DNA of 64,000 nucleotides from Lepidodermella squamata (GCA_047495785.1 JBLDXI010000074.1:1550001-1614000); one strand, 5' to 3'. Counted from the stretch's first letter, positions 14,870 to 31,491 are shown. The notes: generated from the letters alone by a model not told the origin. Numbers and translations: made by a program.

Positions 14870-16810
14870 CATGCTTGCAGCTATGATCCGATCCGATGCG
14901 ACACTCTCAGACATTACAGTTGTTGTAGCTTGATCTATAACTGCTAATTGTGCGAAACTCCTTGTTCCTTTCTCTCGTTCTCTCTCTCTCTCTGTCTATC
15001 TCGTGCGCGCTACCTCGCATTCATTTTCGCGCAGAAGTTAGCAATTTTCATTTTCCATTGAAGTTTATGCCAAATGCATTGTAAATAAAAGAAGAATCAT
15101 TGTCGATATTGCTTGCATAGGCAAGGCCGTGATCTGTGCGAGTAGCTGTTAGCTAGCTACCTGTCTGTACTGTTTGTCGTTGCAAAGCACAAGACAATAT
15201 GAAGGCTTATATATTGTAGTAAAATGAGTTCAATAATTGACCTTGCCCTATCAGTTAATTGTGACGATGGATGGCTATGATGATGATGATGAGCTTTTTA
15301 CACGGTGTCAAAATTGTACCAAAAAATACCTGTTATTTATTTGCGATGACCACTTACGAATGACAAAAAGAGCGCTTCTTCTACTCTCAATTTCCTGATC
15401 TATAACACGTTATGCGCGTTCTTCTTCTTTTGTAAATACTCCTGCTGTTCTCTACTGCCTATCTATTATTATAGAAGAAATTTCACTATTTTTGCTACCA
15501 TTAAAAAGTGAGTACATCGTAATTATTATTTCTTACCAATCCAAATACATGTTAATACTATGGGATCTACTGTTCGCAGTGATGTGAAACCACTTGTTGT
15601 GCCGAACATAGCTACTTATTGGTGTTTGTTCTCCGAAGAATTGACGAAAGAAAGAATCTCCTGCTTTCAAGTTGTTCACAGGCCACTCTTTCTCTTTTGC
15701 CAGTTGCACCTCGATTTCATCCTCTGCGAATACTACACCTATTTAATTGATGCTTCAATTAATTCAAAATTCAAAATATATGCCTGCCTGCCTGCCTGCC
15801 ACACAGCTCAATCTAAATCTTAACTGAAGAATGTTCCGTTACTGTATGACACAAGTTGCGTATACTTATATTATGGTAATATTTCTGCTTCTATTGCTGC
15901 TGCTGCTGCTGCTACTGTTGCTACCTATATAGTAATAGCGTCATCTAATAACTCGTTTACTGCTCGCGCCGTTCAGTTTTCGTTGTTTTCGTCAACTTCA
16001 AACAAGAAGTATAACAACTCGTGTAACCTGTCTGTTTTTTTCATATATGTAACGCAGCGCAGTAGTAGTAGATATAGCAGCTGATTGAATGTTGAAGATG
16101 ACTTTATGACTTTATGTAGCAATCGGCCCATGCATGTACTAGCGGTCTATTGTTGTGTTCATCCTTCGATGATGTCTTACCAAACTGCCCTGATGATGAT
16201 GATGATGATGATGTCCTTGATTTGTGCCTTGATTTTATAATAATTAATAGAACTATACTTATACTGTTATTCAAAATCGACTTAGTCATGACGAATTGCT
16301 ATACTTTGTATACAACATGCAAATTATATAATATCTTATTATACTATAGATAATGATGATATCATCTTCAAATGTGCAACTATATCGTATTTATATGATG
16401 TTCTTTTTAATGTGTACGTCTTGTGTGTCATCATTCTCTGCAACTACTTTTTCATCTTTGTACATATATGATATTACTTATTTATATATTTATAGCTTCG
16501 CGACTTGCTCTTCTATTTATATTACATATGAGACTCTGCGAATGATGGGTGAAGTTTGTAAAACCACGACGAGACTTGCAATTTTGAGATCAAATCTATT
16601 GATAATTAATAAAAACCATCAAATTCGATATATACACAATGCGGTTTACCAGAAAACAAAACAAAAAGTTGGTTCAAATTAGTGTGGGCGTAGATAACGC
16701 TCTATTTGTTTATTAAGGTAATAAACACAACCAAGTTGTCACGTGAAAAATAACTACAAAGCAGATGGCTTCATCAATCTTCTTTCTGCTCTTCCTTTAG
16801 AATTCCGAAT

Positions 16811-19676
16811 TCAACACGTGAATCGAGCGGCGGATAAAATCGACTCGAAGACGTATGTGATTTCGGCGCATTTGAGCTGAATCGCGTAGACGGCGATCGA
16901 CCCGCCGCCCGTCAGTTGGCCCAGCTTCGGCCGAACCGCAAAATCGTCGTTGATCAGAGGCTGCGTTTTTTTTCGCATAAGTAGTCACAATTTATTTCAT
17001 GCCTGTTAAGTAAAAAAGAATGCTCAACCTACCTGGCAAGTCTGCGTTCGATAGTCGAAGGCCTCTTCGCCGCAGCAGCGGTAGAAGGCGAATATCGACG
17101 GTGCGATGAAGAAGACGCGATTCTGAAATATTTATTCAGTTTTTCATTAAATTATTGTAAGCACTACTACATGCCGCTACTTCTTTTGGCCTTCTTCTAA
17201 TTTTCTCAGTTTCATAATATTTTACCTGGCACGTGAGTGGCTCGTGGTCGTCGGGCAAGAAAACAGCCCGAGCAGTTTCCGTTGTAGTCGTCGTTGTCGT
17301 CGTCGTAGTAGTCGGTGCGGTCGTCGTCGTCGGCGGCGGCGGCGGGTATAACTCTGCTGCGAGGCTGTCAACAAACGATGATGCCGCATTCGAACTGCCA
17401 ACTCCACGCTATGATCAAGATTCATTCATTCAGTTATATGTATTGGAAAAACTGTTCGTGCTGGGAGAACTTACAGCTTGATTGCTGGTGCAGTTGTACG
17501 ACCGCGTGTCGTAGATGACCGTCTGCGCGCAGCAGGCCAGCGTCGGCACGATGCGCCGCAACGCGCCAATGTCCTCGAATGCGAAATTGCGAAAAAAGCA
17601 ACAGAACATGAACGATTCAAGTCGTCGAAAACTCTCGAAGAAAACTTACGACCTGCCCACACATCTGAATGCGCACGAAAAAGGCATTGTGCAATTTTTC
17701 ATTTGAATAATTGGAAAAATTTTACCTCTCGTTGCTGTTCAGAAATAAAAAAAAAACAGATGACTTTTGAGAATTTTATGGAGACGTCTCAACAACTTAC
17801 GTGGTGCGATAACTTGTTTTCGAAGGCAGCAAACTCGCGACTGGTCAACTGCTCTTCGTAACTGGAAAAGCTGCTGTAGTAAGGCCTGTTGCGCCGCCGC
17901 GAAGGCGCAGTCGCCTCCAGTGTCGTCGTCGTCGTCGGTGCAGCAGTGGTTGTCGTCGAAGTCGAAGTTGTCGATCTCTGGGAACGCTCCTAACTCGCAC
18001 TTTCAAAACCTTAGCAGTTCCGAATGGTAGAAAACATACGTATTCCCAGAATTCGTACGGGCTAACGTCCAAGTCAAGGCTGAATGGGCTGCGGTAGACT
18101 GCTGCCTGTTGCGCAACCTCGTCATTCTCAGGTAGTTGTTTTAGCTCAGGCGCCGATGCCTGCGATTAATTCGACAACCCTTAGTTGTTCGTCAACTGTT
18201 CAAGTAAGGTTAAACTGTTATTCTTACGGCCGAGTGCAGCACACTGTTAAACGTCGAAACGGCAGCGCTGTTTCGCTGAAACGTAAGTATACAATTCATG
18301 AGACGTTGGACTGTATTATACAGGCAAAAAACATTGTATACCGAAGACCGATCGGAAGGAGCATCCGTTGTAATGCTGGGCGCTTCGGTGTTTCGCCTGC
18401 GCGAACCGCCGGCGAGTTCGACCATGAAAGGCTGCGCCGTCGGTTGAGCCCGCCAAATCGGCCACGGCATCGTCGGTCTGTTGCCGGATGGTTGCGGCTG
18501 GCGGCGGCCGAGCGGCATCGGCGCCAACAGCCCGCCGAACGCGTCCACAGCCGCCGCGTCGTTCTGCACCGGCGCCGCGCCGGCTGGGTAGTCGGCGACC
18601 ACCTTGTCGGCACGTGGCCGAACTCCGAACCTGTTATCGAGTTCGCAAATCATAGCTGTGGATCAAAATATTGCTCGTGCAGGATAATTACGCGAATGTG
18701 CCATTTTTCAGGTAACATAGCCGTTGGCCGTCATTGCAGCACCCGAACACAACCGAAGGATCTATAAAAAGACGAAATACACAAGAGGAGTTTCTTTTTA
18801 TCGCGTGAAGGAATCATCACGAATAGGTTTTACCTTCGTAGACTTGGCCTCCGCAGCACAGTTCGTGCGATGGGTTGTAGAAGTCTTCGCCACAAGCCAG
18901 GTAGTACAACATGTTGCCCACTAATCAAGGCAAGAGAAATAATTATTGAAATGATCATTGAATCTTCTCATGAGACTAGACGCTATATGAGTCGGAATCA
19001 TACCAGGGGTGAGGAATCGGGATTAGGCGGGGGGAATAATTCGAGAAATTTTTAAGAATTTTTAGATTTCTAACAGAGGGAAAGTTGAGAAAATGGTCAG
19101 ACTCTTTTAGCATTATGAGAAATTCCAACTTTGCTGTCGGGAAGTACTGCGTCGGGTAGTGTTCAACCCCAAGCTCGGGCGCTGTCAACGGTCCGATTTA
19201 TGCTATATGGAAACATGAAATTACGCGTTGATGGCGTATTGCTGTACTGGCGCCAGTGCCTCGCCTGCTGCTGCTGTTGCTGAGGCGGGTGATGCTTCTG
19301 GTAACGCTGCTGCTGTTCGATCACCGACGGCTGCCGCTGATACTGCTGCTGCTGCTGCTGGTAAGGCCCATACTCGAGCTGCTCCTGTTCGGGCTGAACA
19401 TACTTGGGCCGAGAATAGTAACCGCCATACCTGAATATCGCAAGAGTTATATATCGGATGCATTATTTTCGAAATCAATCACCAGTCTTTGCCGTTATCG
19501 CCGTCGTAGTAAGGCCGGCTGCTCGGCATCAGGTGCCGCGTGTTGAACACAGCCTGGTTGTGATTCGCGTTGTACAGCTGCGACCAGCGCTGCGCCCAGT
19601 TGCCTGATACCCGCGGCACTTCAAAGAGGATGACAGCCGAGATGGCCATTATCATCAAGTGGAGAACAAACGCCAT
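16811..19676 (-). CDS. Multi-exon (about 14 or more) secreted protein with a Gln/Tyr-rich N-terminus, Thr-rich mucin-like tracts and galaxin-like di-cysteine repeats
   Basis: Signal peptide MAFVLHLMIMAISAVILFEVPRVSG (19676-19483). Exon 19430-19225 reads WYGGYYSRPKYVQPEQEQLEYGPYQQQQQQY. Exon 18920-18834 contains ACGEDFYNPSHELCCGGQVYE. A later exon reads TLACCAQTVIYDTRSYNC, and exon 17122-17033 contains FYRCCGEEAFDYRTQTCQ. Thr tracts lie at ~17970-17900 and ~17340-17280. The putative last exon is 16960-16811. Most introns are 45-76 nt GT-AG. Junctions near 19130-18920 and 18716 are unresolved. Confidence 0.7.
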
Positions 19677-21480: not shown

Positions 21481-23255
21481 GGCATTCGTGAGGCTTTCAG
21501 TGTCATACTTGTCTTGGCGAATAATATGGGCATTCATTTCCCAAGTACCTCGATCAGTACTTATGGTTTCAGTTCTTAATATTGAATACTAATTGACAGC
21601 ATGCATGCACCGCAATACCGCAAGTATGACATAAGCTGACATCTGAGTTCATTATATCATACGTAATACAGGTCTTATTTCTCAAGTTCGAAGTTACACC
21701 AGTCCAGCCTTGATTGTCCGATATTGTTATTTTCTTCTTCACTCTCTCAACTTGCGTGTTTCAGCAAACTGCTTTTTGGCAATCTATTCATAGATATTCA
21801 CTTTTCCTAAGAAAATCAATGACATTGTTTTCGGTATGTGTTGCAGCTCCGGTACCTACTAATCATCTGGTTCAAAATGATGGATTCTGTGGTAAGGCAG
21901 TGAAACGCGCTGAACCAACATACAAATACAATACAATGTGTTTTATTGCTGTTAACCCAGTTGAATTAAGTCATTAACTAGTGGTAGATCGGTTATCATA
22001 TCAATTTCAGAGTAAACTAAATTACAAAAGCATGGGACAAGATAAGGCTAACGAGATGAGGCTAACAGAGAAACTCAAACACGCATCACACAGCTAATCG
22101 CACGTGGTGCGGCTGTTGCGAGGAACAACGTTTCTATAATTTTTGAAAATATATTTTTTATAATACAATAATAATTTAAACCATATTCAAATTGTATTAA
22201 AAAATAAAGTTGATAAACAGAAAATGATGATTGATCAGTTCCTCCAAAAAATCGCTTCGGAAAAAATCGGAAAGTCTGGCGATTTAAAGGTTCATGCTCG
22301 AGAGTGTCGCAAACGATGGCTTATCGGTTCTGAACTATTTAAGCTGCATTGGTGATACGTTGAGTCTTCTGTTGAGCAATATCGTGAGTTAAACCGACCT
22401 TCATTCGATAATTTGCGTTGCCTGTTGCCTCGGGCCATCACATTCGATCGATGTCGTTGGTCGAAGAAGTTGTGCGTAAGAAAACTGATTGGATACCTGC
22501 TCGCAACATCACTTTCCTTGATTTAGCGACTATCGAATATTTTATGTGCCTGGCTATGGCTATCTTATCGAACTCTGGACTCTGGACTTTGGACTTTGAC
22601 CCCTTACACTGGGCATCATGTAAACGTTGCTATGAGTTACACCAGGGTGGCCTGATCTTTGTGTTCACGTGACAGCTGGTGCTTATTCATTCAAGTAATG
22701 CGCATGTATTACAAATATCATCTCGAAGCTCGTTTTAAATTGAGATTCGAATTGCGTGGCATTACACTGTGTGGCGTACAGCATGCGCCCATTACTAGGG
22801 AAGAAATCGCGTGTTTTAAGCGAATTTTATTGTTTTATTTGCTCTAAGAATTTTCAATTTGAATTTAGGGTTAACTCCAATCCGCTCTGCCTTTTTTGTT
22901 TTGTTTCAGATATGATCGGGTTTAACGAGCTTTACTTCTCCCCTCTTTTAACTGTAGTTACGTGATCTAGAATCGAACAAGTACTTTCTACTTTTATATG
23001 CAAGAACAATGTTTATACTGCATAAAAACCTGATAATTTCTCTCCCGATACGCTTTGAATCAATCCTGATTTGAACCACTGACTATAAGTTGAGTCTTCA
23101 AGCATTGAATGTATGCTTTTTCAACACTTTAAGATTGTATGCTTTGGGAAAGACCCTTTCAGGCGTCTTAACTTCTGAATCGAACTATCCCTGTTTTTTG
23201 TTGATGCTAACTGACGTTGTTTAATATATAGGGCCTTCTTAATATTGTTGTGAAG

Positions 23256-24872
23256 ATGGCCTGTATTCCGGAATTTTTCGCATCCAAGAACATATTGATA
23301 ACAGGTGGCACCGGTTTTATCGGCAAGGTGCTCATCGAAAAGTTGTTGCGGTGTTGTAGTAAATTGGACAAAATCTACGTTGTTGTGCGGGCGAAAGGCA
23401 ATGCAAATGTGAAGGAACGCGAGAAGAAGTTTATTCAATGCAAAATCTTCGATCACCTACGCGGCCGTGACAACGTGTTGTCGAAGATTGTATTCCTGAG
23501 CGGCGACATTCAGCAGCCGGCGCTCGGGCTCAGCCAGGACGACATTGAACATTTGGCGGCCGTCGTCGACATAGTCTTTCACTGTGCTGCTACTGTAAAA
23601 TTCGACGAGCCTATCATGTGAGAATATACTCGTTCTACTTTGGGGTCATGCAATATAATTTTTTGTTCTACTACGAATAGGATTGCGCTACAGCAGAACG
23701 TAGGCGGCACGCTGGAGCTGATAAATCTGGTGAAGCGGTTCGCGCACCTGCAGTGCCTCGTGCACCTGTCGACGGCGTACGCGAACTGCGACCTGGCGCA
23801 CATCGAGGAACGGCTGTACCCGGTGGCGATGGACCCGCACAAAGTGCTGGAGCTGGCGTCGTGGATGCCGGAGGAGACGCTGACGAAGATGACGCCGGCG
23901 CTGATCGGGTCGAAGCCGAACACGTACACGTTCACGAAGCACCTCGCCGAAGTGTTGGTGGTGGCGGAGTCGCCGGTGCCGACGGCGATCGTGCGGCCGT
24001 CGATCGTGGGCGCGTCGTGGCGCGAGCCCTTCCCCGGCTGGATCGACAACCTGAACGGGCCGTCGGGCGTGTTCGTGGGCGCCGGCAAGGGCATCCTGCG
24101 CGGCATGCTCGTCGACCGGCACTGGCGCGCCGACATCGTGCCGGTGGACCTGCCGGTGAACCTGATGATCGCGAGCGCGTGGCACATGGCGTCGCAGCCG
24201 CGCACCGAACGCGTCTTCTACAACTGCACGGTGGACGAGGCGAACGCGTGCACGTGGGGCGAGATGGACGCGATCGTCAACTCGTACTTCGAGAAGACCC
24301 TCCCGCTCGAGAACGTGTACCGCTCGCCCAAGTGCCACCTGATGGAGAGCGAGTCGCAGTACGTGGTGCGGTCGTTCATCGGCCACCGGTTGCCAGCGCT
24401 CGTCGTCGACGCGGCGTGCCGGGCGGTGGGGCAGCGGCCGCGCCTGCGCTCGCTGTACGCGCGCGTCGAGAAGATGGTGTGGACGCTGCAGTACTTCGCG
24501 AAGGGCCACTGGGCGTGGACGCGGGCGAACGTGCGGCAGCTGCAGGCGCTGATGGCGACCGAGGACGCGCTCGTGTTCTACGTGCAGTACGACGCGTCGC
24601 TGTCGTGGCGCCAGTACCTGCACGACTTCTGCTTCGGCGTGAAGAAGTACCTGCTGGGCGAGGACTGTTCGGAGAAGCGCGTCGGCGAGCTGCGGGTGCG
24701 CATGCAGCGCGTCAAGGTGGCCTACGCCGCGCTCAAACTGCTCGCCGTGCTCGCGCTGTGGCGGTGGGTGGTGGGCGCGTTCGCGGGCGGGCGGCGCGTG
24801 CAGGCCGCCGCGCTCCGCCTCGCCTCGTTCCTCTTCAGCCTGTTGTCGCGCTTCTTCCTGCCCCTGCACTGA
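23256..24872 (+). CDS. FAR: Fatty acyl-CoA reductase (FAR, male-sterility family), 517 aa, two coding exons 23256-23617 and 23681-24872
   Basis: Rossmann motif TGGTGFIGK, HCAATVKFDE, STAYAN, catalytic YxxxK (PNTYTFTK), IVRPSIV..S..EPFPGW, and a C-terminal hydrophobic anchor. The 63-nt GT-AG intron joins FDEPI-M-IALQQNVGGT in frame. Confidence 0.95.
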
Positions 24873-27800
24873 AATACTGACTTCGTACAGCCTGCTATTT
24901 CTGATTACTTATGAGTAAACTACTATCTGTATGTGTCTGTCATACGAAAACAAAGCTACATCTGCATATCATCATCTAGTATATGTGTGTGTGATCTATG
25001 ATGATGAACGTGTCGTTCAAGCATCTTTTGCTCTTTTGCTTTTAACTGTGTGCCTGCAATGGCGGCGATGGTAACCATGATGATTGGTCAATTGAAGCAG
25101 TAATAAATAGTAAATCGTAGCTCGCCTGCTTGGTTGCTTGGTTGGTGTCTGTGTTACTTTCTCGCTCATCGTCTTGTTTGTTATCATTCAATTCATTCAT
25201 TCATTCATTTCTCAGATGACGATGAGCATGTGAGTTTTTGTGTGCAATACATACATTCTTTTAACGAAACCACCACAACTACAGCTACGACAAGTAGTTC
25301 TTGACTCTACCTATCCATCTTCTTCTTCTTATGCTTGTATGCTTGTTCGACGTCCTCGGTGTAGTTTCTTTTAATTGCTTGCAAGTAAACATTTCGTATA
25401 CCAGTAGTATACCAGCATATCGATAGATAGATAGATAACACTCCTAGATAGGTGGTGGTATACTGCTGCGTGCCTAGCAGTGAATCACTTGAATTCGATG
25501 GATGGCTGCCTTCTTACCGTTGCGTCGATTCTTCTTCTTCTTCTAAGTTCGTTATTCGAACTGCATCGACGACTCGAAATCGAACTACTTGTGCCTTTGA
25601 ACAGAGTTGTTTCTCTCATTTTCGAGTGAAATGCCATCTTATTAAACGCGCGTGTGTGTCATTTTATCATCCATATGTGTACCTATGTAGAATTTGAAAC
25701 GTCGAAACACGAGGCTGGTTGTTTAATTAGTTGATTTTTCTACTCACTTTAAACTATTCATGAATTGAAGTGCAGTCAGCTTGCCATAACTACTTGTACT
25801 TGTTTCTTCTTCTTCTTCACGTTTGCATTGCATTGCATTATTGGTTCTCTCATGTGTGTGTAAGTGTGTTGGCTGCCTCGGATTTTCGCTTCGTCAAGCT
25901 GGTGGCGTGAATCACAAGTAGTTGATCTGAATGTGCCTACCAACCAACCTACCTACCTGGCTACCTATCTAGCTGCAATCATCTCAAGTGCGTACTCATA
26001 GCCTCATGAAATATCATCGAATTTGATCTTCGATCTGACTGCATCGTCATCTTCATAATATACCTATGTAGGCATATCAGTAGGTTTTTTCTTACGACTT
26101 GCAAGTGCAAAACTCCCTCTCGGCTGCTCGTCTCTTGTCCTCTCATTTAAGAATATTGTAAGTTTATATACTTTACTTTACACAATATATGACAAAAGTG
26201 TTGTGGCAATTTGTTTGTCGTCGTGTTTTTTTTGTCTTCATTGACGTTGTCACCAGTGTGTTTGCGTTGTGCTACGGTTGAATTACCTGTAAAAAGAGAT
26301 GATGATTTGTTGTTATTGGACTAGTCAGTCTCACGATTGGTTAACTTTGAAATAACTTGTTCAATTTCGATTGACTTTGCTTCTTCTTCTTCTTCTTCTT
26401 CTTCTATGATTTTATTTTCTGAAACCTTTTTTACTACCAATATATTAATATAATGCGAATTATACGCCAATGTGTACTAAAGCTATCAGCTCCACCGCCC
26501 CGACACTTACTTACAAAACTAAATACGGCCTCGATCCTCGATGATGATAGCTAGCAGTTGCTGTGTCTAATAACGGCTGATTCTGATGCTGATGCTTGAG
26601 CACATGAGCGTATAAATAAATGAATGTCTTGTATTTATCTACACCATGATGATAAATATAATAATAATAATATCAAACTTGAACTTTGTTATGCATTACC
26701 TGAAACGTGGCTTTAACAAACGGCTCTGATGTTCAGTAGTAAGTCACACCCTGTGATTGATTATTCCTCTGTTTTTTTCTGTTCATCTCTAATAGCATCG
26801 CCATTGACATTTTTCCGCGCAGAGCAGTCAGTAGCAGCGCTAGAGCAACAAAGCAACTGCTTCATGCGCCATGTGCTACTCACCACCAATTCTCTCTCTC
26901 CATCTCTGTCTCTCTCGTCATGTTCGAAATCCAAAGTCTTGAGCCAGACCAGCTCGTAACTTGGTCGATTACCCGTTACTTACCACTTGAAGAATGCAAT
27001 TCATACTTATACAGAAATGAAAATGTTTGTTTGCTGCTTTTGATCGCTTTTGAACTTCGCTGGGAATCCCATCCGATAGATTCGACCGACGTAAAGCTTG
27101 TGCGTTGCCTCCCAACTACTTGTAACCCTCCCAGCTGTTTGTATCTCAAATTATTATTAATTGGAAAATTGTTATATTCTACGGCGGATGATATCAAAAG
27201 CGAAACTAGTATGGTTTAAACAACAAGTTGCGCGCATGAAATTATGCTAAAACTACTATTGTGAATATCAACCCGTGTCTTGTTGTTGTGTACCAACTTC
27301 ATGATGTGTAAACTATAATATTGCTATATCATCATCATTATACGATACGATACACGGTATATACGGTATGATGATGACAAAGGTGACAACGTGGAACTGC
27401 GAAACAGTGAAACAAAATTATAATAATAATAAAAAAGCCAATGAGACTGAATCCACTCTTGTTTTGCGATTCGAAAGCTTTCAGGATTAACACGGGAGTT
27501 TTAGCTGTAGTGATTTACGAACTTGACCATCAAATTGCCATGCTTCTGCTCCTTCATTATCTAGCTGTTCAACGCTAGTACGAAGAAAGGATTTTAGGGC
27601 ATTACAAGCCTTCTAAGCTATTATTTCGTCGGTATTGCGAGATTCCATCGCCATTTTGTTTCTCGATTTTGAGTTGACATTTTTAGACACGGTTTTTTCA
27701 TTGAAAATTATAGCGGTTTTAAAACTTTTTAAAGATCGCCAATCCTTTTGCATGTGTTCTATACCTATCTGAGCACGAAATTGGAGCAGCTGCTGTTTTT

Positions 27801-28508
27801 ATGGAGATTGCGAAAATTTTTGAAACTAGCATGCTATCTATGCGTCACTTGCCAACTTGAAATTTTCCTCCACCTTGAAGAAGACGTGGATTTTCTAGTA
27901 AATTCGATCGAAAAACCAGCATCCTAGTAGGATGTTTAAGAGCTTTGACTTTCAGGGGATACAGAAATATAGCTCATCAATTCAATTCAGCTGTCGAATA
28001 ATTCAAGTACAGGATCAATCACCACCATCAGTTGAGATGATATTGTTGTAATGACTTGACAAGAAAAAAACCTGTGTCGTAAATGGCTGTTTGCGACCTG
28101 GCCAATCGCATCACTTTATTAGTTGCGACTTTGAAAACATTTCGGTTTTTCATTCGAAGCAAGAAGTATTTGCTGCTGAATCAACCAGCATCATCACCAC
28201 ACACGTATTGGAGGCAGAGAAGCAAGCGTCTCTGCCTGTCGATGCTGTTGATACAGATAGGTACATTTGTCGTAGGATCGCACGTGACATACACTAACTA
28301 AAGGCGTTGTTTAGTTGCAGAAGTATATAGCAGTAGTAAAAAGAACACTGAGTAGCGAAAACACAACAACTAGACAATGACGACGAAGACATTGTTCAAA
28401 TGAAACAGTTTCACAGGTGGATGGATGCGCGCGCGTGTTTTTCACAGGATGAGACTGACTGACTGACTGATCGTTCGTTCGATCGATCGATGAAGCAAGA
28501 GGAACCGG

Positions 28509-30695
28509 CTACAATTCTTCGCAGGCGAGTTCGCGCTCGTGCACCTGCGGCTGCTCGCTTTCGTTGTTGTTGTCGATGCCGAGTGGTGGCGAAGCAGCAG
28601 TTGCAGACGAAGAAGGGAGACCACCAGAAGTTGAAGGTGCGGCGGCTGCTGGGTTGTCGAAGACGCCGAGTGCAGGCACGCCCGACGCTGACGAAGACGA
28701 GATCACGTGATGCTGCCGGCTCGAAACAGCAGCAGCAGCGGAGGACGAGGCGGAGGCGGCGGCTAAGCTGTTGGCGAGGAGGACAGCGATGCCGGCAGGA
28801 GAAGCTGCTGCTGCCGATGGAGGAGACGCCGAAGAACCACCAGCGTACGTTGTCGTCGTCGTCAACCGCTTGTCTTTTTGCTGCAATAATCAATCAAAAG
28901 TCAGAAGTAAGGGAAAGCAGTAAAGCAAAGCAAAGCAAGGACTCACGCGTCTGTTGCAGAACCACACGCGGATGACTTCGCGCTCCATGGCGAGGTCGTT
29001 GGCGAGGCAGGCGATGTCGTCGCCGCTGGGCTTGGGCTGCCGCCGGAAGTAGTCCTCGAGCGCGTGCTTCGTCAGCTGGTCGATCGACGTGCGCTTCTTG
29101 CGCTTCCGCAGCGCCCACGTGTCCGCCAGCGAGAACCCACTAGCACCACCGTTTGTACTGCCAATCACCGTGTTGTTGTTGTTGTTGTTGTTCGCCGAGG
29201 AGGAGGACGAGCAGGCGAGAAGACCGCCGCCACCCGTGTTGTTCATCATGTGCAGCATGTCGGTGCCACTCGTACCAGTGGTGGTGGTGGTTGCAATGGC
29301 ACGGGTGAGCACGGCATCGCCAGCCGCCACCTCGGCATCCTCCATCCCATCGTCGTCGTCATCGTCGTCATCTAAATCTTCTTCCTGTTCGTCGTCCTCG
29401 TTGTGATCGTCGTCGGAAGGCGGCGACAACAGCACCTGTGCAGTCGTGGCACCCGCAGTCTTCGACAGGTCGTGCACCCGCGAGCACAAGTCCTCAGTCA
29501 CCGTCGTCGCCGTCGACGCAGCAGCAGCATTCGGTGATGATGCCGACGCATCGTTGTTGTCTACGCCGTGGTCGTCGTCGTCTTCATCGTTCGTCGGCGA
29601 GGACATGGCCGAGTGGCGGCGGCGCCGGCGAGTGCCCGTGCCGCCGACAGCCAGCAACGGCAGTCGCTGCTGCTGCACCGTCGACGAAGAGGCTGCTGCG
29701 CTCGTCGAATGCGACGGTACACCTGCTGCTGCTGCTGCTGCGGCTGGTGGTGGTTGTTGTTGTACGATGACATTGCTAGGCGACAGTAGACTCAGCGGCA
29801 GTTGTTGCTGAAGATGGCTGGCAGTGGCAATGGCGGCGGTCGAAGTCGAAGTCTGTGGCGGCGACTTGCCATTGCCATTGCTGCCGTTGGTGGCTGTCCA
29901 CTGCAGGGCCTCGTGCAGCCACCGCTCGAGCATCGGCTTCAACTTGCACATGTTCTTGTAGGACAGATTAAGCGCCTCGAACCGCGAAATGGTCGTCTGC
30001 GAAAAGTCGTTGCCGTACATCTTGCCCATGGCGGCGCCGACGTCGCCCTGCGTGCAGCCCAGCTCGATGCGCCGCCGCTTGAACTCGCGCGTGAACCGCT
30101 CCAGCTCGTCCAGCGCCACGTCCTCGTCGACGGCCGGCAGCGGCAACGCACCACCGCCTCCGCTACTCGTTGTTGTTGTCAGTGATGGCACAACAGTAGA
30201 AGCAGTAGGCTTGTCTGCTTGGGCTTTACTCGCAGCAAATGCTGACGATGTGACTGGTTTGTGGTGGTTCTGGCGAGATACACTCAACTGTTGCTGTTTC
30301 GAAGCCGACTCGTGCTCACTACTACTGACATCTAGCTGTTGCTGTTGCTGCTGCTGTTGTAGCTTGATGAGTCCGCTCGAACCGGCGGCGGCCGACTGCA
30401 GCAGCAGTTGCTGCAACTGCGCCGTCGTCAGCAACACGACCGGCTGCGAGAAGTTGATCAACTGCTGCGATGGCGACATCGAACTGCCGCCGCCGCCGCC
30501 ACCGCTCGTCGCCATCGTCAACACCACCGGCATGCTCGTCGCAGCAGACGGCGATTCACCAGCCGCTGCCTGCATGGCCGGCTTGAGCACGTGCTGCCCG
30601 CCCGTCACCTGCGCCATCAACGCCTGAATCTGCTCGACCACCGACGACGGCAACTGAGCCTGCTGAGCCTGCGCCTGCGACTGCTCCATCATCAT
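28509..30695 (-). CDS. POU2: Class II POU-domain transcription factor (Oct1/Oct2/nubbin-pdm type); exons ~30695-28947 and 28880-28509
   Basis: The POU-specific domain [58 protein letters not shown] carries class II residues ([18 protein letters not shown]). The homeodomain RKRKKRTSI...[11 protein letters not shown] is completed across a 66-nt GTGAGT..AG intron as QKDKR. Further upstream exons are possible. Confidence 0.92.
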
Positions 30696-30957
30696 GATTA
30701 CAATCCAAGCTAGCTCGAACTCTCTCTCTCTCTCACACAGACTCACACACAAGTTAATACATCATCTATGAAAAGAAAAAAACAAAACATATTAGGGAGG
30801 GAAATTACTGAACAAAGTGCCGAACACGAGGCATTTACATTCTGCCTGTTTGTCGTATATTGCAATATTCTGTTAGCTGCCGCTGCTGCTGCTGCTAATG
30901 ACAAAAATGGCATCATGCAGCTCTACGAACGACGTATGCATTATGCACAAGCAAGTA

Positions 30958-31491
30958 ATTTGCATGATGTGATCTGCGACTCGACTCTGCATCGACCGAC
31001 CGACCGACCGACCGCATGTCTGCGAAGACTAGCGAGCGAGCGAACGAGTGAATTTGCAAATGCACATACATACATACATGCTTGCATACTTGCATACATA
31101 AACATCATCAGAAGAGTAGGCTCTCATTTGCATATTACAATCACATGCGCACATCCATGAACACAGCCAGCTCGTTTTATTCTGAACTCGCTCGCTTATT
31201 ATCACCGCCTGCGAATACTTACTACCTACTAATACTACTCCTACTAATCAATTCAGCACGCTCGCCACATTTGCATCTCATTATCCTTCTCATGTATGCA
31301 TGTGCGCAGCTCATCAGCTCATTACTAAGCAAGCACCGCACGCACGTTCGCAATATGCAAATTTCATCAATACATGAAAATTTCGAAAGCGCCTACGTAT
31401 CCAAAAAACTCCTGGCTCTGCGTTATCACACGATAAATTACTATGCAGTCCACGAATATACCCAAAATCATAATAATAATAATATGCAAAT
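30958..31491. promoter_or_regulatory. Cluster of five perfect octamer motifs (ATGCAAAT/ATTTGCAT) upstream of the POU2 coding region
   Basis: ATTTGCAT at 30958, 31126 and 31269; ATGCAAAT at 31355 and 31484; a near-match ATTTGCAAAT at 31052. Confidence 0.75.

Follow-up and report, generated by a model that had tools for sequence, protein, structure and literature searches.

A class-II-like POU protein of Lepidodermella squamata with a 266-residue linker between its DNA-binding subdomains, most likely coding and disordered

The window analysed here, a stretch of 64,000 nucleotides of Lepidodermella squamata DNA (positions are counted from its first letter), contains on its minus strand a POU gene whose POU-specific domain and homeodomain are separated by 266 residues. 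In all likelihood this stretch is genuinely coding. The linker is the longest among 245 POU2-type proteins surveyed, and the two relatives found in the same small clade also carry linkers of more than 100 residues. It rather probably represents a disordered acidic coding segment which exceeded 100 residues in the clade ancestor, was doubled by slippage, and serves mainly as a flexible tether allowing octamer clamping.

Gene structure and class of the protein

Exon A belongs to an open reading frame at 28890–30752 on the minus strand, a strand not given in the initial prediction; the ATG at 30695 agrees with the N-terminus of the orthologue P0001 in the alignment. The gene is nearly intronless, with one confirmed local intron, and joining of exon A to exon B gives the segment CNRR-QK(D/E)KR conserved in relatives. 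The coordinates of the features are collected in Table 1. No Pfam family was matched in exon B. Two microsatellites, (GACT)4.5 and (GATC)5.8, are located at 28453–28491, immediately after the stop codon and presumably within the 3' UTR.

Table 1. Features of the POU gene and its upstream region in the window
Feature	Position	Strand	Description
Five perfect ATGCAAAT octamers	30958..31491	both	263–796 nt upstream of the ATG
Exon A	28947..30695	-	583 codons, ATG to ...VWFCNRR; from ORF and translation
N-terminal low-complexity region	30129..30695	-	aa 1–189; two conserved helical motifs, aa 19–30 and aa 83–107
POU-specific domain	29907..30113	-	aa 195–263; Pfam PF00157
Inter-subdomain linker	29109..29906	-	aa 264–529, 266 aa; predicted disordered
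Basic motif T-R5-H-S	29610..29633	-	aa 355–362 (R5 = aa 356–360); sole patch of positive charge in the linker
First acidic tract	29550..29591	-	aa 369–382; charge profile; GAC/GAT triplet families
Main acidic block	29331..29417	-	aa 427–455; 16 D/E within 20 residues
Perfect (AAC)7 tract	29172..29192	-	encodes N7; TRF: period 3, 7.3 copies, 100% matches
FSLADTWA(L) motif	29109..29135	-	just before the homeodomain arm; 8/9 identical to the orthologue, E 7e-4
POU homeodomain, first 54 residues	28947..29108	-	RKRKKR arm to CNRR; Pfam PF00046; the rest (QKDKR) in exon B
Phase-0 intron	28881..28946	-	66 nt, 39% GC; GTGAGT...TTATTGCAG, read from sequence
Exon B	28509..28880	-	homeodomain end and 118-residue A/S-rich tail; 123 codons and stop

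Both conserved motifs of the N-terminal region are common to P0001. HMMER alignments to mollusc POU2 proteins reach into this low-complexity region, where an N-terminal QL-rich motif is shared with them, and AlphaFold2 predicts helices at aa 17–30 and aa 91–100.

The Pou domain was identified by Pfam (PF00157, E 1.3e-33, score 115 bits with the cut-off at 27, profile positions 3–71 of 72), as was the homeodomain (PF00046, E 1.4e-14, aa 532–583), which is C-terminal to it within one ORF. PDB chains of POU2F3, POU2F2 and POU2F1 align with the protein in two blocks (query 190–268 and 522/529–583), the alignment of the Oct-1/2/11 homeodomain covering both the RKRKKRTSI arm and VWFCNRR. The recognition segments SQTTISRFE and RVWFCNRR are the same as in POU2F3 and POU2F2 according to the PDB alignments, and their columns are invariant across an alignment of 36 sequences, which was also used for the AlphaFold2 run. 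The best PDB matches are the class II proteins POU2F3/2/1 (160–170 bits), followed by class III (151), class I (125), class V (115–120) and class VI (96). Named matches among the best 120 are nearly all POU2, nubbin, pdm or 'POU domain protein 2'. By the scores and names of its best matches, the protein is therefore assigned to the POU transcription factors as a class-II-like member (Oct/nubbin type). The POU2 identity implied in the original prediction is supported by Pfam, PDB scores and database matches alike. The domain order and the recognition segments are those of POU2F1/2/3 (Oct-1/Oct-2/Oct-11) and nubbin/Pdm. In the AlphaFold2 model, pLDDT is ~80–92 for the POU-specific domain and 94–97 for the homeodomain, being roughly 80–97 over most of both; their GC content at third codon positions (GC3) is 0.95 and 0.96, respectively.

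Reading frame, composition and predicted disorder of the linker

A linker of ~265 residues at 29109–29910 had been predicted initially, and translation confirms it: the 266 residues lie between A263 and R530. The coding frame has no stops in 266 codons, and the other five frames have 2–7. Dinucleotide-preserving shuffles of the linker contained 6.3 stops on average, and only three of 5000 were open. The GC content of the linker is ~62%, and no 50-nt window of exon A is below 46%; GC content dips to 34% over 50 nt within the real intron and is ~38–45% in the flanks. In a motif scan, no GTRAGT donor was found inside exon A and no pyrimidine-tract acceptor inside the linker, since the two pyrimidine-tract/YAG sites of this exon are both located outside the linker. 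The confirmed intron possesses a GTGAGT donor and a pyrimidine-rich acceptor. The linkers of the relatives are also read through: that of P0001 (117 codons, 43% GC) is an open frame, as are 44 of 5000 of its shuffles, and that of the second relative, P0215, is read through over 148 codons in one frame. Since the frame is open, the GC content is high, splice motifs are absent and the linkers of relatives are read through, the linker is judged most likely to be coding. The prediction of a single uninterrupted frame with an unlikely hidden intron is supported at the level of sequence, in which no indication of such an intron was seen and the frame, the GC content and the shuffles agree.

GC3 of the linker (0.69) is lower than that of the folded domains and close to the value of the N-terminal low-complexity region (0.70). 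We read this lower value as a sign of weaker codon selection or of young repeat-derived sequence, rather than of non-coding DNA.

The low-complexity composition corresponds to what had been claimed: the linker includes 38 alanine, 34 serine, 30 threonine, 27 aspartate and 21 glycine residues, the basic motif and the D/E tracts. It has 35 acidic and 12 basic residues, that is, a net charge of −23. In addition to the AAC tract, an alanine run (aa 318–324) is encoded within a period-3 CAG/GCA tract at 29723–29746 (8 copies, 90% matches, TRF), and GAC/GAT triplet families are present in the linker DNA as well. Segmental duplication inside the linker was considered and ruled out, because only low-complexity triplet families and no long direct duplications were found. 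Since the triplet tracts are perfect or near-perfect and no longer duplication is present, replication slippage of triplet repeats was probably the source of linker growth.

AlphaFold2 gives a pLDDT of 36–50 for residues 275–523, which are modelled without secondary structure. The sole secondary structure predicted for the linker is a four-residue helix (524–527) at the FSLADTWA motif. A Pfam search matched nothing in the linker. Together with the charge, the model suggests that the linker is most likely intrinsically disordered and net acidic.

Linker length among POU2-type proteins and within the clade

Linker length was surveyed in 245 POU2-type proteins having both domains, with the positions corresponding to A263 and R532 in the alignment as end points; the sample comprises only the best-scoring POU2-like representatives. 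The median length is 25 aa, the 95th percentile is 54 aa, and 167 of the 245 linkers have 20–29 aa. A range of 15–56 residues is given for POU linkers in the literature (PMC4576985). Both sources support the earlier statement that these linkers normally span a few tens of residues. On the scale of the survey the linker of the window protein has 268 aa, which is ~10x the norm, nearly 5x the published maximum and ~1.8x the next longest among the proteins surveyed. The next positions are held by P0215 (148 aa), P0163 (144 aa), P0015 (125 aa), P0001 (117 aa) and P0147 (94 aa). POU2F1/2/3 and nubbin/Pdm have linkers of mostly 23–30 aa, whereas that of the window protein (266–268 aa) is strongly acidic and is encoded by an almost intronless gene.

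The window protein falls outside the description of POU linkers as short. Since the range of 15–56 residues is descriptive rather than a formal criterion, its POU membership stands, and the protein is best regarded as an outlier of the family. Because linkers longer than 90 residues are found in ~2% of the surveyed POU2-type proteins, the quoted range understates natural variation of POU linkers.

Long linkers of up to 94–144 aa occur in unrelated invertebrate POU2 proteins. P0163 (XP_022667343, Varroa destructor/jacobsoni) is a predicted model annotated as 'POU domain protein 2-like', a class II POU protein. Its linker is G/S/P/H-rich with a net charge of +1 and is half as long as that of the window protein. 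Since this linker is far past the textbook range and Varroa is an arthropod unrelated to the clade of the window protein, long POU2 linkers appear to have arisen more than once.

An apparent linker of 340 aa in P0121, a partial model from the springtail Orchesella cincta, was rejected because two tandem POU genes are read through in it. Tandem POU domains are likewise held by P0122 (an ENA metagenome protein) and P0123 (another Orchesella cincta partial model), which suggests that in all three models the gene caller joined POU2 genes duplicated in tandem. P0126 (848 aa) lacks a homeodomain but contains several repeats resembling the POU-specific domain, whose WLEE-x-E-x-AIANGA tails are similar. 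A divergent POU-like locus was observed at L009:1758-3879 (JGI Ga0157374_10016660), where the POU-specific part and the homeodomain are ~1.5 kb apart in different frames; the homeodomain has an insertion before helix 3, and the POU-specific part is followed by a 498-codon open frame that is not low-complexity.

Relatives of the window gene were sought by a word search, an exhaustive search of representatives, a profile search and a scan of JGI metagenomes. Across these searches the clade-specific relatives found were P0001 (ENA metagenome contigs L001–L003) and P0215 (a Logan contig from run ERR12037361); loci L004–L008 turned out to be ordinary POU2-type loci with short linkers rather than further clade members. 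Two protein signatures are common to the window protein, P0001 and P0215. The POU-specific domain of P0001 is 91% identical to that of the window protein over 81 aligned residues, and the FSLADTWA motif before the homeodomain is present in both. Contig L001 is collinear with the window: the adjoining gene of fatty-acyl-CoA reductase matches 23238–24887 (plus strand) with 62–75% identity. On the basis of the collinear gene order and the shared motifs and domains, P0001 can be considered the orthologue of the window POU gene.

Some minor observations concern the same neighbourhood. Further genes at 16800–18900 also follow the order of L001, so that the whole neighbourhood is syntenic. The best named matches of the reductase in the window belong to a nemertean and molluscs (~40% identity). 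The orthologous coding DNA differs strongly in base composition (28947–30695 and L001:1635-2783), GC content being 62% in the window linker and 43% in the linker of the orthologue.

Intron positions also differ (window 28881–28946 and L001:2770-2824). In the window a phase-0 intron follows CNRR immediately and none is present after EDYF-x-x; in L001–L003 and P0215 the homeodomain intron is located after EDYF(S/L)K, and CNRRQKDKR is uninterrupted in L001. These differing positions among orthologues imply loss and gain (or sliding) of introns inside a small clade.

Alignment with POU2 orthologues, which had been proposed as a check, placed the window linker first in length, at about twice the others, but the linkers of the relatives already exceed 100 aa. 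The claim of an exceptionally long linker is therefore upheld as regards its extreme length and tempered by the long linkers of the two relatives. Since P0001 and P0215 both have linkers of more than 100 aa in one open frame, the long linker is apparently a trait of this small clade, of which the window protein is the extreme; the relatives differ from it in length and in the AT-rich composition of their DNA. In the window protein a naturally occurring POU factor combines two intact subdomains with a linker ~5x the published maximum. Together with its relatives (117 and 148 aa) it forms a length series in which effects of tether length and charge on cooperativity, spacing and search kinetics could be studied.

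Sequence conservation within the linker is low. In a BLASTP comparison restricted to the linker, FSLADTWA alone gives a significant match with P0001, since neither the acidic patches (E ~1) nor the RRR-x-x-S stretch (E 6.2) reach significance, and no significant match was found between the linkers of the window protein and P0215. The elements QQLPL-x-LL, RRR-x-x-S and the acidic block, taken from a global alignment as conserved motifs, were dropped after this comparison. The linkers of the relatives are both Q/S-rich, with a net charge of −8 in P0001 and +3 in P0215, the latter having no acidic block. Since the acidic tracts are weak in P0001 and absent in P0215, they are not regarded as ancestral.

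Possible functions of the linker and alternative explanations

The history outlined at the beginning would comprise two steps: the linker would already have exceeded 100 residues in the common ancestor of the clade, and in the lineage of the window protein it would have about doubled, probably through triplet-repeat slippage. As a long flexible tether, it should leave the clamping of the octamer ATGCAAAT by both subdomains in place, since both are intact and their base-contacting residues are kept. The reach of such a tether was estimated with a Gaussian chain (persistence length 4 Å; charge and excluded volume ignored), which gives an rms span of ~90 Å; the contour length is ~1000 Å. At a distance of 30 Å the calculated effective concentration is ~0.63 mM for a linker of 268 aa and 4.4 mM for one of 26 aa, and at 100 Å it is ~0.1 mM and ~1e-7 mM, respectively. 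According to these values octamer clamping should survive at a few-fold penalty, since locally the second subdomain would be only a few-fold less concentrated than with a normal linker. The constraint on spacing and orientation of half-sites would become much looser, so that half-sites separated by as much as ~30 bp could be reached. The block with 16 D/E residues among 20 may in addition shield the basic arm of the homeodomain for a time or act as an activation patch, which is the least certain part of this proposal.

The region upstream of the gene contains five of the seven matches to ATGCAAAT in the window, where ~0.05 per 534 nt would be expected from the shuffle mean; this cluster would be in line, though indirectly, with cooperative octamer binding by the two subdomains. 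Adjacent octamers of this cluster are separated by 86–168 bp. Since this spacing far exceeds the estimated rms span, bridging of the upstream octamers would, on this model, need DNA looping.

In vitro, the Antp homeodomain is autoinhibited electrostatically when D/E tails of 7–16 residues are attached to it, and target search can be accelerated by such tails (Wang et al. 2023, PMC10250230). By analogy, it is plausible that the acidic block masks the RKRKKR arm. The homeodomain segment with this arm has a net charge of +4, and the block is located ~75 residues upstream of the arm, so that a D/E repeat (16/20 D/E) is tethered to a basic DNA-binding domain. The same arrangement, with a disordered segment as the tether, is known for the acidic tail of HMGB1 and the engineered Antp homeodomain (PMC10250230). 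In those systems the tail is terminal; lengths of 7–16 residues were tested in engineered constructs, and the natural tail of HMGB1 was also studied (PMC10250230). The acidic block of the window protein, in contrast, lies between two DNA-binding subdomains. AlphaFold2 predicts no confident contact for it.

A stronger version of this idea, in which the linker is a functional module, is unlikely, although it is the best placed of the alternatives. The acidic block would then autoinhibit the homeodomain or tune target search as a DNA mimic, R5-H-S would serve as a phospho-switch, and the length of the linker would permit reading of separated half-sites or bridging of DNA. The position of the acidic block before the basic arm, the strongly negative net charge, the behaviour of tethered D/E repeats and the polymer estimate, by which the effective concentration is at least 0.1 mM out to ~100 Å, are consistent with it, as is the occurrence in P0001 of a weaker acidic patch and RRR-x-x-S in the same order. 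However, this acidic/basic likeness to P0001 is non-significant (E about 1 and 6), the linker of P0215 is near neutral, the upstream octamers are too far apart for the rms span, and much of the linker consists of perfect or near-perfect triplet repeats, which suggests slippage rather than selected sequence. Since the linker is barely conserved and P0215 lacks the acidic block, any specific function of the acidic tracts could at most be peculiar to this lineage, and the added length may be nearly neutral. Neutrality of this length would mean that bipartite DNA recognition is tolerant of triplet-repeat growth.

It is doubtful, and somewhat less probable than such a module, that the protein acts as two semi-independent heads, electrostatically gated, which read half-sites tens of bp apart or on two DNA segments. 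In that case the lengthened tether, with a DNA-mimicking acidic block and a basic patch embedded in it, would have turned a rigid octamer clamp into an electrostatically gated two-head factor, and nature would have provided a test of the way in which site choice by POU proteins depends on the length and charge of the linker.

An exitron, that is, a hidden GC-rich intron which is in frame and has weak splice sites, could cause most transcripts to lose a large in-frame part of 29109–29906. Exitrons typically sit in low-complexity coding regions, and the linker is a region of this kind; its GC3 is also below that of the folded domains. This explanation is nevertheless improbable. The only confirmed local intron is short, has a low GC content and carries clear splice signals; the linker lacks windows of comparably low GC content, GTRAGT motifs and pyrimidine-tract acceptors. 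By the shuffle test an open frame would not be expected here, and the linkers of two relatives are open over 117–148 codons.

Neutral runaway expansion, in which the subdomains have become near-independent or the gene is drifting to loss and the length of the linker is meaningless, is very improbable. The linker is fast-evolving and poorly conserved, slippage-prone perfect repeats are present, and linker length within the clade varies from 117 to 268 aa, as such expansion would predict. The POU-specific domain has nevertheless kept its high identity to that of the orthologue, GC3 is high in both domains, all recognition-helix residues are retained, the frame is intact across 583 and 123 codons, and the upstream octamer cluster is kept.

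Inflation of the linker by mis-assembly of low-complexity repeats is hardly credible: several triplet tracts are present in the region, but they are short (up to about 30 nt) and separated by unique sequence, long direct duplications are missing, the reading frame is unbroken, and the flanking sequence runs in the same order as in the orthologous contig.
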